Shown: one piece after another, positions 14,191 to 29,527 of the stretch | How the letters are laid out: the number at the start of each line of letters is the position of its first letter | How positions within the stretch are numbered: position 1 is the first letter of the stretch | From: Piromyces finnis finn | Taxonomy: Eukaryota > Fungi > Neocallimastigomycota | Assembly (NCBI GenBank): GCA_002104945.1 | Contig: MCFH01000008.1 | Coordinates: 1-64,000, forward strand | Length of the DNA stretch: 64,000 nucleotides | Reading direction: 5' to 3' | The notes under the pieces: model-generated | The model's database searches: none | Told to the model about the DNA's origin: nothing | Seen by the model: only the letters and a program-made list of their open reading frames with translations | Program-made: the position numbers and the translations under genes

Positions 14191-15573
14191 ATGTTAGATA
14201 TTATGGAAACAAAACAATCTCATGTTGGAAATTCAATAATGGAAATAGAAATATCATCAAATAGTTCACACATATTTTCAGATTCTTCTTTGACTGAACA
14301 TTTTTTCAGTGATTCCTCACTTTCAGAATACTCATTTTCAGAATTATCAGAAATAGATCAGGATTTACTCGAAAAACCAAAATCAGTGTCAACCAATTTT
14401 TCAGTGAAAGAATCAACTGAATCTCCAACAATTCTTTTATCAGTTGAAACTACAGATTCCGAATTCAAACATTCAACCTCGAATCCCCAAAAAATTCCAT
14501 TGGAATCATATACTGAACAATTAACAAATGAACAGCAGTATAACACAAATTCAAACCATTTAAAATCAACAAAAAACTCTTTAACGAAAGAACAGCTAGA
14601 TAAATTAAAATTCATAGAATCAACCATTCAACCATCCTCTAGAAATCCTTTAAAACATGCTAGACAGGAATTACCAAAACAATCACTACCAACTCAAATT
14701 CAAGATTTATCTCTACAAAATAAATCAAAAAGAATGTCATTAGAATCCTCAGAAGTTGAAATTATTTCCATATCAGGAAAATCAAATATACCCAAGTCAG
14801 ATGTTGTGAAATCATCTCAACTAAAACCTAAATCAGTTGACCCCACTTTTTCAATACAAAACGTAACCAATATTTTATCCACTAGTCCTATTCCTTTACT
14901 AAGCTTATATGGAAGAAATGCGAAAGTACTCAATCCAATGATGAATAATACTTCTTACCCATTTGTAAATACTAAGAATTTTTATGTTTCAGGAGTAAGC
15001 GTTACCAATACATCAATAGCCAATTGTAATGATAATATGATTAATACCATTCCACAAACTATGATAGATCTAAACAAAAGTGCAGATTGTATGAATGATT
15101 CAAGCATCCTGACAGGTCAGACAGATGATGATAAGGATAATAATAATCATGGTAGCTTTAATAAAGGAAAAAATAATGTAGGGAATTATAATATAGGTAA
15201 TAATAATACTGGTAACAACAATATTGGTAATAATAATGTTGGAAATAATAATATTGGCGATAATAATGCAGGTGACAATAATAAAGGTTCAAATAATAAT
15301 GGAAATAATAATTTTGGTCATAGTAATGATGGAAACTACAATACTGGAAGTAATAATATCGGTAACAATAATTTTGGTAATCGTAATAAAGGAAATGGAA
15401 ATAGTGGCAATAGTAATTTTGGTAACAATAACATTGGTGATATTAATATTGGTGATTGTAATCAAGGCAATGGTAATATTGGAAGTTATAATCATGGAAA
15501 TGGCAATACTGGAAACAACAATGATGGAAATAATAATTTAGGGGATAATCATAGAGGAAACTTAAATATATGA
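14191..15573 (+). CDS. Ser-rich protein with C-terminal GxxNx pentapeptide repeats
   Basis: Intronless 460-aa ORF. The last ~135 aa keep a strict 5-residue period (GNNNV GNNNI GDNNA...). Confidence 0.8.
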   Translation: MLDIMETKQSHVGNSIMEIEISSNSSHIFSDSSLTEHFFSDSSLSEYSFSELSEIDQDLLEKPKSVSTNFSVKESTESPTILLSVETTDSEFKHSTSNPQKIPLESYTEQLTNEQQYNTNSNHLKSTKNSLTKEQLDKLKFIESTIQPSSRNPLKHARQELPKQSLPTQIQDLSLQNKSKRMSLESSEVEIISISGKSNIPKSDVVKSSQLKPKSVDPTFSIQNVTNILSTSPIPLLSLYGRNAKVLNPMMNNTSYPFVNTKNFYVSGVSVTNTSIANCNDNMINTIPQTMIDLNKSADCMNDSSILTGQTDDDKDNNNHGSFNKGKNNVGNYNIGNNNTGNNNIGNNNVGNNNIGDNNAGDNNKGSNNNGNNNFGHSNDGNYNTGSNNIGNNNFGNRNKGNGNSGNSNFGNNNIGDINIGDCNQGNGNIGSYNHGNGNTGNNNDGNNNLGDNHRGNLNI

Positions 15574-16962: not shown

Positions 16963-18408
16963 TTATATGTATGGTGAAAATGTGTATAATTTACTAACGA
17001 AATGTTTATAGTCGTAATCATCACAAACACAATAGCTACCTAAATCATTGTTTTGGAGATCAGTATTTTTATTTCTGATCACAAATTCACGGTCACTTTT
17101 GTAACCGTCAGAAGCAAGGTCTGAAAATTGAACAACAAGACGAACACTATAAGCTACAGCTTTACAAGCAAATAAAGTTTTTGGTCTTGGAATAACCGAA
17201 TAACCTTTATTACATAAAGTGTACATATTATCTTGAAAAGCTTTATCGCATTCATTTTTATTTGGATTACAATGATAGCAGGAGTCATGACCGTTACATG
17301 CAGGTGTAAAAAAGTAAACAAAATCATCAAGTAATTTATAATGAGCGGAACAACCGTCAACTCTACCACCAGTTTTACGGATAAAAATACTACCATCATT
17401 ACTATTGTAAACCGGTAAATCTTTATCATTATTAATAAAGTGATCAACAGTAATGTAAGAATCCTTAACCTTACAATCATACTTATTTCTCTTACTTAAA
17501 CCATTATTATAACTATTAGATATTTCTTCTAATTCTCGAGTTTCTTCTTTAATTAATTTAACAGATTCATCAATTTTGGCATTGTTGTAAATTTCCTTAA
17601 ATTCATCGATGAGTAAACATTGATTAATACAAATATTGTAATAGTAATCATTGTCAATCGTTCCTTGGCCTGACTCATGTAATACCTTGTTATACGTTTC
17701 TAAGTTGAAATTATTTTTTGGATCATTTATAATAGTTTTAAATTGAATATTAGCATCGGTACATTTAGCCCTACATTGTTCACTACTAACATATTGTAAA
17801 TCAATTCCATCTAAAGTTTCGGTGAAATTCATAGCATTTTCAAAACCAACTAAAGCAAATTCACTAAAAGATTTGAATTCAGCAGCTTCAGCCGGATCAG
17901 GTAGGACAAGCTTCATAGCTTTATTAACTTTTTCTTTGGTATCATTGTAAGTATTTGCAAGTTTGAGATTACCTTCTTTTCCTTCATAAATGTTATTTCT
18001 TTTGGTTATGATGGTGGTACCATGGATGAAACATTCACCATATTGATTTTGACAACCAATACTACAATATTCGCTACCAGTACCGCAATAACCATTACTG
18101 TTACAACATTCACCAGAAGGACATCTACCAAAATCCTCACCACACCTTCCATCCATACTAATAAAATCATAATAATGAGAATAGTTTAATTGTGCCTTTA
18201 AACAAATAGAGGAACCTTTTATTAAATTATTGCAATCGATGCCGGGATTTAAGATTTTTAATTTAGTTAAAGAAATTTCATTTTGAGAAGAAATACTATA
18301 ACAATAGTCATCTTTTTGAATAGTGTAATAATGTTCACAAACTATACTAGATGCAATGGTAACTGGAATTAAAGAGAATAAGAATTGTATAATTTTGAGA
18401 TTTTTCAT
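16963..18408 (-). CDS. Secreted LysM + CBM18 + phospholipase A2-like precursor
   Basis: Signal peptide; LysM (YTIQKDDYCYSIS...LNPGIDCNNL); CBM18 (GRCG..FGRCPSGECCNSNGYCG...C); C-terminal DGCS...FTPACNGHDSCY...CDKAFQDNM..LC, typical of fungal/prokaryotic sPLA2. Confidence 0.8.
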   Translation of the reverse strand: MKNLKIIQFLFSLIPVTIASSIVCEHYYTIQKDDYCYSISSQNEISLTKLKILNPGIDCNNLIKGSSICLKAQLNYSHYYDFISMDGRCGEDFGRCPSGECCNSNGYCGTGSEYCSIGCQNQYGECFIHGTTIITKRNNIYEGKEGNLKLANTYNDTKEKVNKAMKLVLPDPAEAAEFKSFSEFALVGFENAMNFTETLDGIDLQYVSSEQCRAKCTDANIQFKTIINDPKNNFNLETYNKVLHESGQGTIDNDYYYNICINQCLLIDEFKEIYNNAKIDESVKLIKEETRELEEISNSYNNGLSKRNKYDCKVKDSYITVDHFINNDKDLPVYNSNDGSIFIRKTGGRVDGCSAHYKLLDDFVYFFTPACNGHDSCYHCNPNKNECDKAFQDNMYTLCNKGYSVIPRPKTLFACKAVAYSVRLVVQFSDLASDGYKSDREFVIRNKNTDLQNNDLGSYCVCDDYDYKHFVSKLYTFSPYI

Positions 18409-27065: not shown

Positions 27066-28297
27066 TTATGCTTTACAGAAACCATAATTTGGTTGACATC
27101 CACTCTTAACTTTACAGAAAATATCTTCAGTACCACACCAACCGTATTTACTACAGCAAGTACCTGGGGCACATCTTCCAAAACCTTCACCACAACGACC
27201 ATCATCACGAATAATAGTATCATTATTGGTTACAGTAGTGTTTGAACATTTACCGTATTGTGATTGACATTTATTAGCAGCACAGTAACTTTCGGAAGTA
27301 CCACACCAACCATACTTACTACAACATTGACCGGAAGGACACTTACCATAAGATTTACCACAACGTCCTTGTGTATTTTTGTTTTTGTTAGAGGCTGGAT
27401 CCTTTGCCCAACAGACACCATATTCATTTTGACAGGTTGAAACACTACAGAATTCTTCGGTAGTACCACACCAACCATATCTACTACAGCAAAGACCACG
27501 ACCACAAGCACCATAACCCTTACCACATCTGTTACTTTGATGAGTAGTTGAAGTTGGTTTTGATTCTTCTTTAGTTGTAGTAGCAACTGGTTTAGCAGTG
27601 GTAGTAGTAGTTGTGGCTGGTTTTTCTTCAACATCAGGTTCAATTTTATTACCTTCTTTATCAATACAGAGGCCGTATTCTGGTTGACATTTATTTTCAA
27701 TTTTACAGTGAGCATCAGAGAAACCGCAGTAACCGTATTTACTACAACATTCACCAGCTGGACAGGATGTACCGAATTCTTTACCACATCTAATATCTTT
27801 TTCAGCATCATTATCATCAACAGTATTAATATTATTAATGACAGCAAATTTATTATTAACACTTGTTCCCATATTTACTGGTGAAATATTAACTTTTTTT
27901 TATGTGTATTTATGGAATAATGAAAAAGTTGTTTTATAAAATTTTAAAAGTTTGATATTAATTTTTTTTTATTAATATTATTTTATTTTAGGAATTATTA
28001 TTTTCAATTTAAATATAATATATCTATTTTTTTTTTCTTTTTACCTTTTTCACAGAAAATATCAGCTGGAATAGCCCATTTATTTGGATATTCTTCGTAT
28101 TGGTAGTGACAAAGATTAGTACCAGAATAATCACAAATAACATTTTCTGGAAGATCTGGAACTTTACCATATAAATTTTTACATGAAGAGAAATTACTAT
28201 TTTTTTTTTTTTTTTGATAAAAACGAAATGAAGAAAAAAAAAAAGTTAATTTGAATGAAAGAGGCATATATTATAAAAATAAAATGGAATAATACCA

Positions 28298-28354
<57 letters not shown>

Positions 28355-28781
28355 GCCATTATTTAATACACCACTGAATATTTATGTAATACATACACAA
28401 TAACCAAGTTTGATAAATTAACAATAGTAACTGGAAGAATTTCTAAACCAGAAGAAATGGCATAAAGTTGATTTAAGTTTGAAAGGTTACCAATATTAAC
28501 TGGTAATTGTTTTAATGAGATATCATTATTTAACATTCTATTTTTAATGGAATAGTGTTAAGAATAATTTAAAAATTAATAAAATATAAATATATATATA
28601 TATATTATAACATATACGTATATAAATTTTTATAGTTATAATAAAACTATAAAAGATAAAAAAAAATTAAAACTTACAAAATACTTAAATTCTTAAGTAA
28701 GGTAGTTGTATTTGGTAATTCAGTTAAATTTGGTAAATCAGACAAATTTCTAAAAAATTTAAATTTTTTTTTGAAAGGTAA

Positions 28782-28825
<44 letters not shown>

Positions 28826-28850
28826 AAATAAATAATAAATAAATAAATAA

Positions 28851-28885
<35 letters not shown>

Positions 28886-29527
28886 ATATTAAAAAAAAAA
28901 AAGGTATTTCTATTCTTACAAAATTTCTAAACGGGCTAAATCGTTTATATTGCTTGGAAGTTTTTTTATGCCTTTGTTACCAGAAAGATCTCTATAGAAT
29001 TATTTTTTATATATAGTATATATATATTGTTTGAGTGAATAATTTTGTAATGTCATTATATATAAATAATACAATTTTTTTTTTGAAAGGAAATGGTATT
29101 TACAAGGCAACTAAAGGTAATTTAGTAATATCTTCATCTACAGTAGTAAGGCCTAAATCACTGAAATCCCTATTTTTCATTTAATCATATTTATTATAAA
29201 AAGTATTATAATTTAAAAAATAAATATATATATACAAATATATTTATTTGTTAATATATATATTTAATCATAATTAATTGATTATTCAAATATAAATAGA
29301 TAAGGAGATATATTTTTTTAAAAAATCATATATATTTACAATTGAATAATATTTTTCATATCATCACTACAAACAACTCTATCGTTAAAACAACAAGATT
29401 CCATAGATTCTTTTATTCCTAAGATATTATTTACTATTTGACATTGTTCCTTAATACTTATTAAAGCATGTACAGATTGACTTGCTAAGGTGGTTAAAGC
29501 AAGAATATTAAATATTTTTTTAAACAT
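27066..29527 (-). CDS. Secreted leucine-rich-repeat protein with four C-terminal CBM18 (hevein) domains, 7 exons
   Basis: Exons 29527-29340, 29169-29104, 28991-28920, 28749-28678, 28537-28397, 28196-28045 and 27877-27066, all GT-AG and in frame. Signal peptide; LRRs (LDLSGNKGIKKLPSNINDLARLEIL); four RCG..CCS.YG.CG modules. Confidence 0.85.

Follow-up and report, generated by a model that had tools for sequence, protein, structure and literature searches.

The window analysed here, the first 64,000 nucleotides of contig MCFH01000008.1 of the anaerobic gut fungus Piromyces finnis, carries at positions 16963–18408 of its reverse strand a gene for a candidate precursor of a secreted phospholipase A2 (sPLA2). 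The coding sequence is complete, comprising 481 codons and a stop with no intron and no internal stop codon, and it is matched over its full length by orthologues. Its G+C content of 27–31 % against 14–17 % in the flanks on both sides is the usual coding signature in a very AT-rich genome. An earlier note, made from the sequence alone, had read in this frame a signal peptide, a LysM module, a CBM18 module, the tripeptide TKR, a segment with two CxxxC motifs, the tripeptide SKR and a cysteine-rich domain of 174 residues with the motif CNGHDSCY and a downstream CD..F. All of these are present at the positions given: TKR is T135-K136-R137, SKR (17488–17493) is S305 followed by the K306-R307 codons, and the His-Asp pair (17284–17289) is H374-D375, within A-C-N-G-H-D-S-C-Y-H-C. 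The public gene model, P0001, is shorter; it has 397 amino acids, starts at Met85 and is without the signal peptide and LysM. This model appears to be N-terminally truncated, since all orthologues conserve both elements and thereby back the full reading of 481 amino acids. The part left out of P0001 corresponds to positions 18157–18408 (reverse strand) of the window, and is kept in all orthologues.

The full-length relatives come from Piromyces sp. E2, Anaeromyces robustus and rumen-type metagenomes, and are 41–65 % identical to the window protein in a word-based protein search and 43–66 % identical in an alignment of seven orthologous sequences, five of Piromyces type and two of Anaeromyces type. 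Invariant in this alignment are all 26 cysteines, the catalytic motif, D351-G-C-S-A, L304, K306, R307 and D311. Conservation of this kind shows that the sequence features did not arise by chance. Residues 1–20 (18349–18408; this and all further features of the gene lie on the reverse strand) resemble a signal peptide: a basic n-region is followed by a hydrophobic core (residues 4–16) and by I-A-S ahead of the predicted cut, and neither A19 nor S20 varies among the orthologues. From hydropathy, residue pattern and orthologue conservation, entry into the secretory pathway is predicted.

The C-terminal domain (residues 308–481, 174 amino acids with ten cysteines; 16966–17487) is of the secreted PLA2 type. 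Its catalytic motif, C371-N-G-H374-D375-S-C-Y378-H-C380 (17269–17298), is defined by conservation and by alignment to solved sPLA2s, and is followed by C387-D388-x-x-F391 (17236–17250), which is invariant in orthologues and paralogues and whose D388 is the candidate dyad partner of the catalytic His374. Residues D351-G352-C353-S354 (17347–17358), which do not vary among the orthologues and of which G-C is also unchanged in the paralogues, are by analogy candidates for the calcium loop. Four independent lines of evidence agree on a PLA2: Pfam, PDB sequences, the wider relatives and the predicted fold. The only notable Pfam match of the domain is PF06951, the group XII sPLA2 family (PLA2G12), which aligns from the G-C loop through the C-D-x-x-F helix (profile positions 78–153 of 184) with 31.3 bits (E 2.4e-7) against a gathering cutoff of 34; the whole protein scores 29.3 bits (E 1e-6). 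The same family is already listed in the precomputed Pfam annotation of the window protein and matches three of the four paralogous domains described below. The group XIV family, PF09056, gives 9.1 bits, below its gathering cutoff of 29.4, and an NCBIfam search with the enzyme segment returned noise only. A single-sequence phmmer search of the PDB with the domain gave no match; a profile built from the four paralogous domains matched exactly three distinct PDB sequences, all of them microbial sPLA2s, namely 1faz of Streptomyces violaceoruber (E 7e-4), 7ygk and 4aup of Tuber borchii, with the H-D pair, the dyad Asp (D388) and three cysteines in register.

The same four-paralogue profile, searched against 1.84 billion representative proteins, found 2002 relatives at E <= 0.001 and 78 at E <= 1e-10. 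Nearly all of the best 148 of these 2002 carry F-x-P-A-C-N-x-H-D-x-C-Y followed by C-D-x-x-F-x-x-N-M. When these 148 were aligned together with the window domain, PF06951 was recognized in 114 of the 149 sequences (best E 1.5e-18) and PF09056 in 74, both at E <= 0.001, and the positions conserved in at least 90 % of them were, in domain numbering, G45, C46, F60, C64, H67, D68, C70, Y71, C80, D81, F84, C92 and C108. Several relatives bear the automatic UniProt names ‘Phospholipase A2’ or ‘Phospholipase A2 domain-containing protein’. Some contain a tandem double PLA2 domain (for example P0028, P0046 and P0141), and more distant matches include proteins of molluscs, a cerianthid (cnidarian) ‘toxin candidate’ and metagenomic proteins with bacterial-looking N-termini.

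An AlphaFold model of the C-terminal domain computed on the relatives' alignment has a mean predicted local distance difference test score (pLDDT) of 81.7, with about 90–97 in the core, and a predicted template modelling score (pTM) of 0.82. In a structural search against representative chains the Tuber enzyme 4aup ranked first (Z 7.9 over 101 of 123 residues, root mean square deviation (rmsd) 3.0), the next chain reaching 5.5. Foldseek gave a probability of 0.98 at an E value of 0.5, and re-scoring of its candidates placed 4aup (Z 7.9), 8k1w (7.3) and 7ygk (6.3), which share 21–22 % identity with the domain, above unrelated chains from 5.2 down. With helical proteins, chance alone can produce Z values below 8, and the Foldseek E value is weak by itself, so the fold claim rests on its agreement with the sequence matches. 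With profile, conserved catalytic residues and the AlphaFold check in accord, the earlier suggestion of a C-terminal PLA2-type domain is borne out. Because the domain lies below both Pfam cutoffs, we file it as a presumably catalytic member of the secreted His-Asp PLA2 superfamily that falls between groups XII and XIV and in neither. The Pfam scores could also be taken to indicate a catalytically dead, PLA2-like domain that binds a lipid or a receptor, as inactive PLA2-like proteins do exist, for example in snake venoms. We consider this extremely improbable: orthologues and paralogues show no change in the His, in the Asp next to it, in the distal Asp, in the Tyr or in the G-C loop, and in the 149 aligned sequences each of these is conserved to at least 90 %.

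Comparison with the two groups places the domain further. Group XIV enzymes, among them TbSP1 of Tuber borchii (4aup), the Streptomyces violaceoruber enzyme (1faz/1lwb), 8k1w and 7ygk, provide its sole PDB sequence matches and its top three structural matches. Their features are a His/Asp dyad, an Asp beside the His, two disulfides formed by four cysteines, and removal of N-terminal sequence on maturation or activation (PMC11525133). Both the dyad and the His-adjacent Asp are found in the window domain, and where group XIV enzymes lose an N-terminal sequence the domain is preceded by a conserved L-x-K-R. It differs in having C-N-x-H-D-x-C-Y, with a cysteine after the Asp, in place of H-D-F-G-Y; in having ten cysteines rather than four, three of which align with those of 1faz within the matched stretch; and in being longer at the C-terminus by some 50 residues. 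None of the known group XIV enzymes, moreover, has LysM, CBM18 or a twin-CxxxC pro-module. Group XII, to which its best Pfam match belongs, has in animals a C-x-x-H-D-x-C-Y...C-D-x-x-F spacing similar to that of the window domain, but those animal enzymes consist of a single domain and are not known to carry chitin modules. Right before x-x-H-D the animal enzymes have a Cys-Cys doublet, and the window domain and most of its relatives A-C. We know of no solved group XII structure. In sequence the family links the animal sPLA2s of group XII with the microbial ones of group XIV, and it may be of help in working out how the superfamily evolved.

The 481 residues contain only two [KR]R dipeptides, both at module borders. 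The first, K136-R137 (17998–18003), lies between CBM18 and the helical segment; the five Piromyces-type sequences share it, and the two of Anaeromyces type lack it. The second belongs to a kexin-type site, L304-S305-K306-R307 (17488–17499), at which a predicted cut after R307 would give the N-terminus N-K-Y-D-C. The L-x-K-R forms an island with a mean column identity of 0.82 against 0.47 in the surrounding variable tail. In the anaerobic-fungal relatives an L-x-K-R is found just ahead of the domain's first cysteine, 49–74 residues N-terminal to the catalytic motif, and relatives whose propeptide amounts to a short acidic peptide lacking CxxxC have it as well. In the AlphaFold model of the helical module K136-R137 falls in a low-confidence linker, and K306-R307, which is probably exposed and accessible, in a tail of low confidence that follows the last helix. 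Fungal Kex2 favours acidic residues at P1', P2' and P4' (PMC2515848), and D311, at P4', is invariant in the seven orthologues. Leu at P4 scores low in the Kex2 matrix as printed (PMC2515848), and we dropped L304 as evidence of Kex2 cleavage; the case rests on K-R, the acidic P4' and conservation. A kexin is encoded in the genome, with at least three loci matching the P-domain family PF01483 above cutoff, one of which, the L005 open reading frame (ORF), combines Peptidase_S8 with the P-domain.

The precursor can accordingly be called Kex2-cleavable, as had been proposed, as far as the conserved and probably exposed K306-R307 and the encoded kexin are concerned; the proposal fits less well with the first K-R, missing from the Anaeromyces-type sequences, and cleavage is a prediction at either site. 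Known kexin precursors such as alpha-factor, the killer toxins and the KEP repeat proteins likewise have a signal peptide, K-R at module borders and an acidic P4', although the KEP proteins are repeat proteins and the window protein is not. The comparison with yeast killer toxins drawn in the earlier note goes no further than Kex2 processing. We rejected a precursor of the killer-toxin type, finding no similarity in sequence or fold, and the cysteine counts of 4, 8, 4 and 10 in the LysM region, CBM18, helical module and C-terminal domain, all even, give no sign of disulfide-linked subunits, while parity alone cannot exclude a disulfide between fragments.

It is also conceivable that K-R is cut partly or not at all, and that the intact protein, held in the wall of the fungus itself by its chitin modules, is an active PLA2 that remodels membranes or lipids there, for instance when zoospores are released. 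There is precedent in TbSP1, an sPLA2 that resides in the cell wall of its producer, within the inner layer (PMC10512230), and structural constraints are reported to leave some predicted Kex2 sites uncleaved (PMC2515848). The chitin modules, too, are kept in all the orthologues. An invariant L-x-K-R island, found also after short acidic propeptides, is nevertheless hard to explain without cleavage, and we hold an unprocessed enzyme to be distinctly improbable.

Between the two K-R sites lies a helical module (residues ~144–303; 17500–17979) with six helices predicted in its AlphaFold model, which was computed on a 20-sequence alignment and has a pLDDT of 81.8 (core ~95). Its two CxxxC motifs, C212-C216 (17761–17775) and C260-C264 (17617–17631), lie in the helices at 83–101 and 129–150 of the module; the first is invariant and the second invariant or nearly so among the 20 aligned family members. 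In the model they are placed such that two disulfides could staple the two helices together. The module had no match in Pfam or the ESM Atlas and only noise in NCBIfam, and two fold searches returned generic helical bundles only (best Z 6.4); TIPE2 and a pectin methylesterase inhibitor were rejected as relatives (probability <= 0.3, rmsd 7–12). A profile of the module, searched against the fungus's own genome, found all four PLA2 genes and nothing else. We infer that it is a family-specific pro-segment, because it occurs only ahead of PLA2, a conserved cut site lies between the two, and known sPLA2s are made as precursors. Rather doubtful, in our estimate, is the possibility that the twin-CxxxC module is a new dedicated pro-domain or built-in inhibitor which, with LysM and CBM18, keeps a depot of latent enzyme at chitin walls, to be freed or activated at the moment when the sporangium opens, the wall is damaged or a competitor is met. 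Were it true, this would be a lineage-specific wall-armed phospholipase system, with paralogues specialized by the position of the chitin binder relative to the cut.

Both chitin-binding modules named in the earlier note are real. LysM (residues 28–70, flanked by C24, C36, C59 and C69; 18199–18327) scores 31 bits with PF01476, above the gathering cutoff of 20.9, and in the PDB it matches LysM domains of chitinase A (E 1e-6). The hevein-type CBM18 (residues 88–126, eight cysteines; 18031–18147) scores 26.3 bits with PF00187, narrowly below the cutoff of 27.8, and is established by its matches to wheat-germ agglutinin and hevein-type PDB chains, with E values down to 4e-8 and every cysteine aligned, and by its eight-cysteine pattern, invariant in the orthologues. 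These N-terminal modules are of the same types as those of fungal LysM effectors and CBM18 chitinases or deacetylases; in such fungal proteins, however, the partner is a chitin-modifying enzyme or absent, while in the window protein it is a phospholipase. CBM18 appears to have been shuffled widely in anaerobic fungi. The genome encodes many other CBM18 proteins, including ones with leucine-rich repeats (LRR), and one of these lies in this window, at 27066–29527. With the CBM18 of the window protein as query, the LRR-CBM18 proteins P0009, P0010, P0013 and P0014 were matched.

A search of the fungus's own genome (56.46 Mb in 232 contigs) with the C-terminal domain, in which the spliced genes L002 and L003 were searched and aligned exon by exon, revealed three paralogues, making four PLA2 genes with that of the window. 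Their domains are 25–34 % identical, and G-C, C-N-x-H-D-x-C-Y-x-C, a lysine, C-D-x-x-F and a later cysteine are invariant in all four. L003 (assembly G000, contig C146, ~270.0 kb) has the layout of the window gene together with introns, one of them inside the second CxxxC. L002 (P0016; C146, ~293.4 kb), also with introns, encodes a signal peptide, the helical module, K-R and PLA2 and no chitin module, and its N-terminus has the same residues as the P. finnis protein ORX49645.1. L002 and L003 lie ~23 kb apart on the one contig, and both have introns whereas the window gene is intronless. The third, L004 (487–2541 of its locus, reverse strand; contig C46, ~702.5–704.6 kb), encodes a signal peptide, the helical CxxxC module, S-K-R, PLA2 and four CBM18 modules; the protein has up to 684 residues, the upstream start being uncertain and the signal-peptide Met lying at residue 20. 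Its C-terminal CBM18 modules sit on long Thr/Lys-rich linkers on the mature side of the predicted cut. The conserved core of the family, as read from these sequences, is thus helical module, K-R and PLA2, and the chitin binders move around it. Because the layouts differ in this way, with L002 having none and L004 four CBM18 on the mature side, we regard the chitin modules as accessory; for L004, at least, chitin association of the active enzyme is plausible.

In Anaeromyces robustus, seven near-identical PLA2-family genes with the consecutive accessions ORX83376–ORX83382 (P0184–P0190) lie on one 202.6-kb contig and constitute a tandem array; six of the seven are labelled ‘Phospholipase A2’ automatically in UniProt. 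All named relatives with the pro-module, a LysM fusion or a CBM18 fusion belong to the Neocallimastigomycota, and from the sequences compared the layout seems to be confined to the anaerobic gut fungi. The literature searched contained no description of a PLA2 family in these fungi or of a LysM/CBM18–PLA2 fusion, phylum and PLA2 being co-mentioned once in another context. The earlier remark that the architecture was not recognized thus holds for the layout and not for the C-terminal domain, already recognized as PF06951 or ‘Phospholipase A2’: the PLA2-type enzyme class is known, and what is lineage-specific is the layout and the pro-module around a recognizable enzyme.

We think it probable that the window protein is the kexin-processed zymogen of a secreted His-Asp PLA2, with chitin association as an accessory property. 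The signal peptide would direct it to the endoplasmic reticulum, and its 26 cysteines would form disulfides within each module. A kexin-type convertase would then cut after R307 in the late Golgi, and in the Piromyces lineage probably also after R137, to yield the 174-residue enzyme. Judged by homology, His374 and Asp388 would form the dyad, Asp375 and the D-G-C-S loop would bind calcium, and the sn-2 ester of phospholipids would be hydrolysed. The helical twin-CxxxC pro-segment would most likely keep the enzyme folded, inactive or both through the fungus's own secretory membranes. LysM and CBM18 would bind N-acetylglucosamine (GlcNAc) polymers, so bringing to a chitin wall the precursor or the pro-fragment, or the mature enzyme in the case of one paralogue; the wall in question is most likely that of the fungus itself, as with TbSP1. 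Since TbSP1, the closest fungal enzyme to have been characterized, sits in its producer's own inner wall, we favour action at the fungus's own interface between wall and membrane.

Kexins act in the late Golgi, before secretion. Both chitin modules are on the pro side of the cut, and an enzyme released there would thus leave without them. The proposal in the earlier note that the two chitin-binding modules deliver the enzyme is therefore weak for this gene: the binders would be parted from it by Golgi cleavage, there is no odd cysteine to suggest a linking disulfide, and across the paralogues the chitin modules are accessory. For delivery to work, the fragments would have to remain associated non-covalently or the cut would have to come late. 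The same considerations bear on the role as a chitin-targeted antifungal toxin, in which LysM and CBM18 carry the precursor to the walls of competitors and proteolysis frees a membrane-lytic PLA2. Such an antagonistic role is a serious rival, although we judge it unlikely. It would make use of two modules that bind GlcNAc polymers, and L004 retains its four CBM18 on the mature enzyme. In anaerobic fungi the family has expanded and diverges fast, as the seven-gene tandem array in Anaeromyces illustrates for its expansion, and PLA2 domains of the superfamily are often fused to lectins or toxin scaffolds: among the best 148 of the 2002 relatives the partner domains include ricin-B lectins, F5/8 type C, RHS/YD-shell, CdtA/C-like (CDtoxinA), GH25 lysozyme, VWA and ice-binding-like domains. 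On the other hand, beyond the expected parting of binders and enzyme in the Golgi and the even cysteine number of every module, the producer's wall is also chitinous and chitin binding does not separate self from competitor, L002 is without a chitin module, and there is no evident immunity factor.

The GH25 lysozyme domain, fused to one superfamily member among those best 148 relatives, bears on a further alternative, that of an antibacterial enzyme aimed at rumen bacteria in the manner of the animal group IIA sPLA2 acting on Gram-positives. LysM and hevein modules recognize GlcNAc polymers generally and could bind the GlcNAc of peptidoglycan, and the fungus lives among dense bacterial populations. 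A strong positive charge is, however, a key feature of bactericidal sPLA2s, and an antibacterial role is made less likely by a mature domain that is not cationic, with an isoelectric point of 6.55 (~4.5 for the paralogues). The problem of Golgi cleavage is the same here as for an antifungal toxin, and we rate this alternative as very improbable.

Several observations weigh against the zymogen reading that we prefer. The scores with PF06951 and PF09056 are both below their gathering cutoffs, the Foldseek E value is weak, and the best structural Z is in the range that helical proteins can reach by chance. The conserved L304 may reflect structure rather than a protease preference, and any inhibiting or chaperoning function of the helical module is purely conjectural. 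In hevein domains three aromatic residues serve in sugar binding, and the CBM18 of the Piromyces-type sequences is without one of these three. Finally, the fast divergence of the paralogues and the tandem array of Anaeromyces look more like a family engaged in antagonism than like a housekeeping wall enzyme.

The anaerobic fungi of the herbivore gut are important degraders of fibre, and hardly any work has been done on the proteins they secrete apart from carbohydrate-active enzymes. The Neocallimastigomycota are seen here to possess a conserved and expanded family of secreted PLA2 precursors, with an undescribed pro-module and chitin modules in varied positions. If the enzyme is active and wall-associated, it bears on how membranes at the wall are remodelled, for instance when zoospores are released or when lipids are scavenged under anoxic, sterol-poor conditions; an active enzyme with an antagonistic role would bear on competition in the rumen.

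Next to this gene the window contains an ORF of 460 amino acids on the forward strand (14191–15573), in which short G-N-N-N-x-type repeats make up a long array at the end, rich in Asn and Gly. Low-complexity coding sequence of this kind is common in the P. finnis genome.

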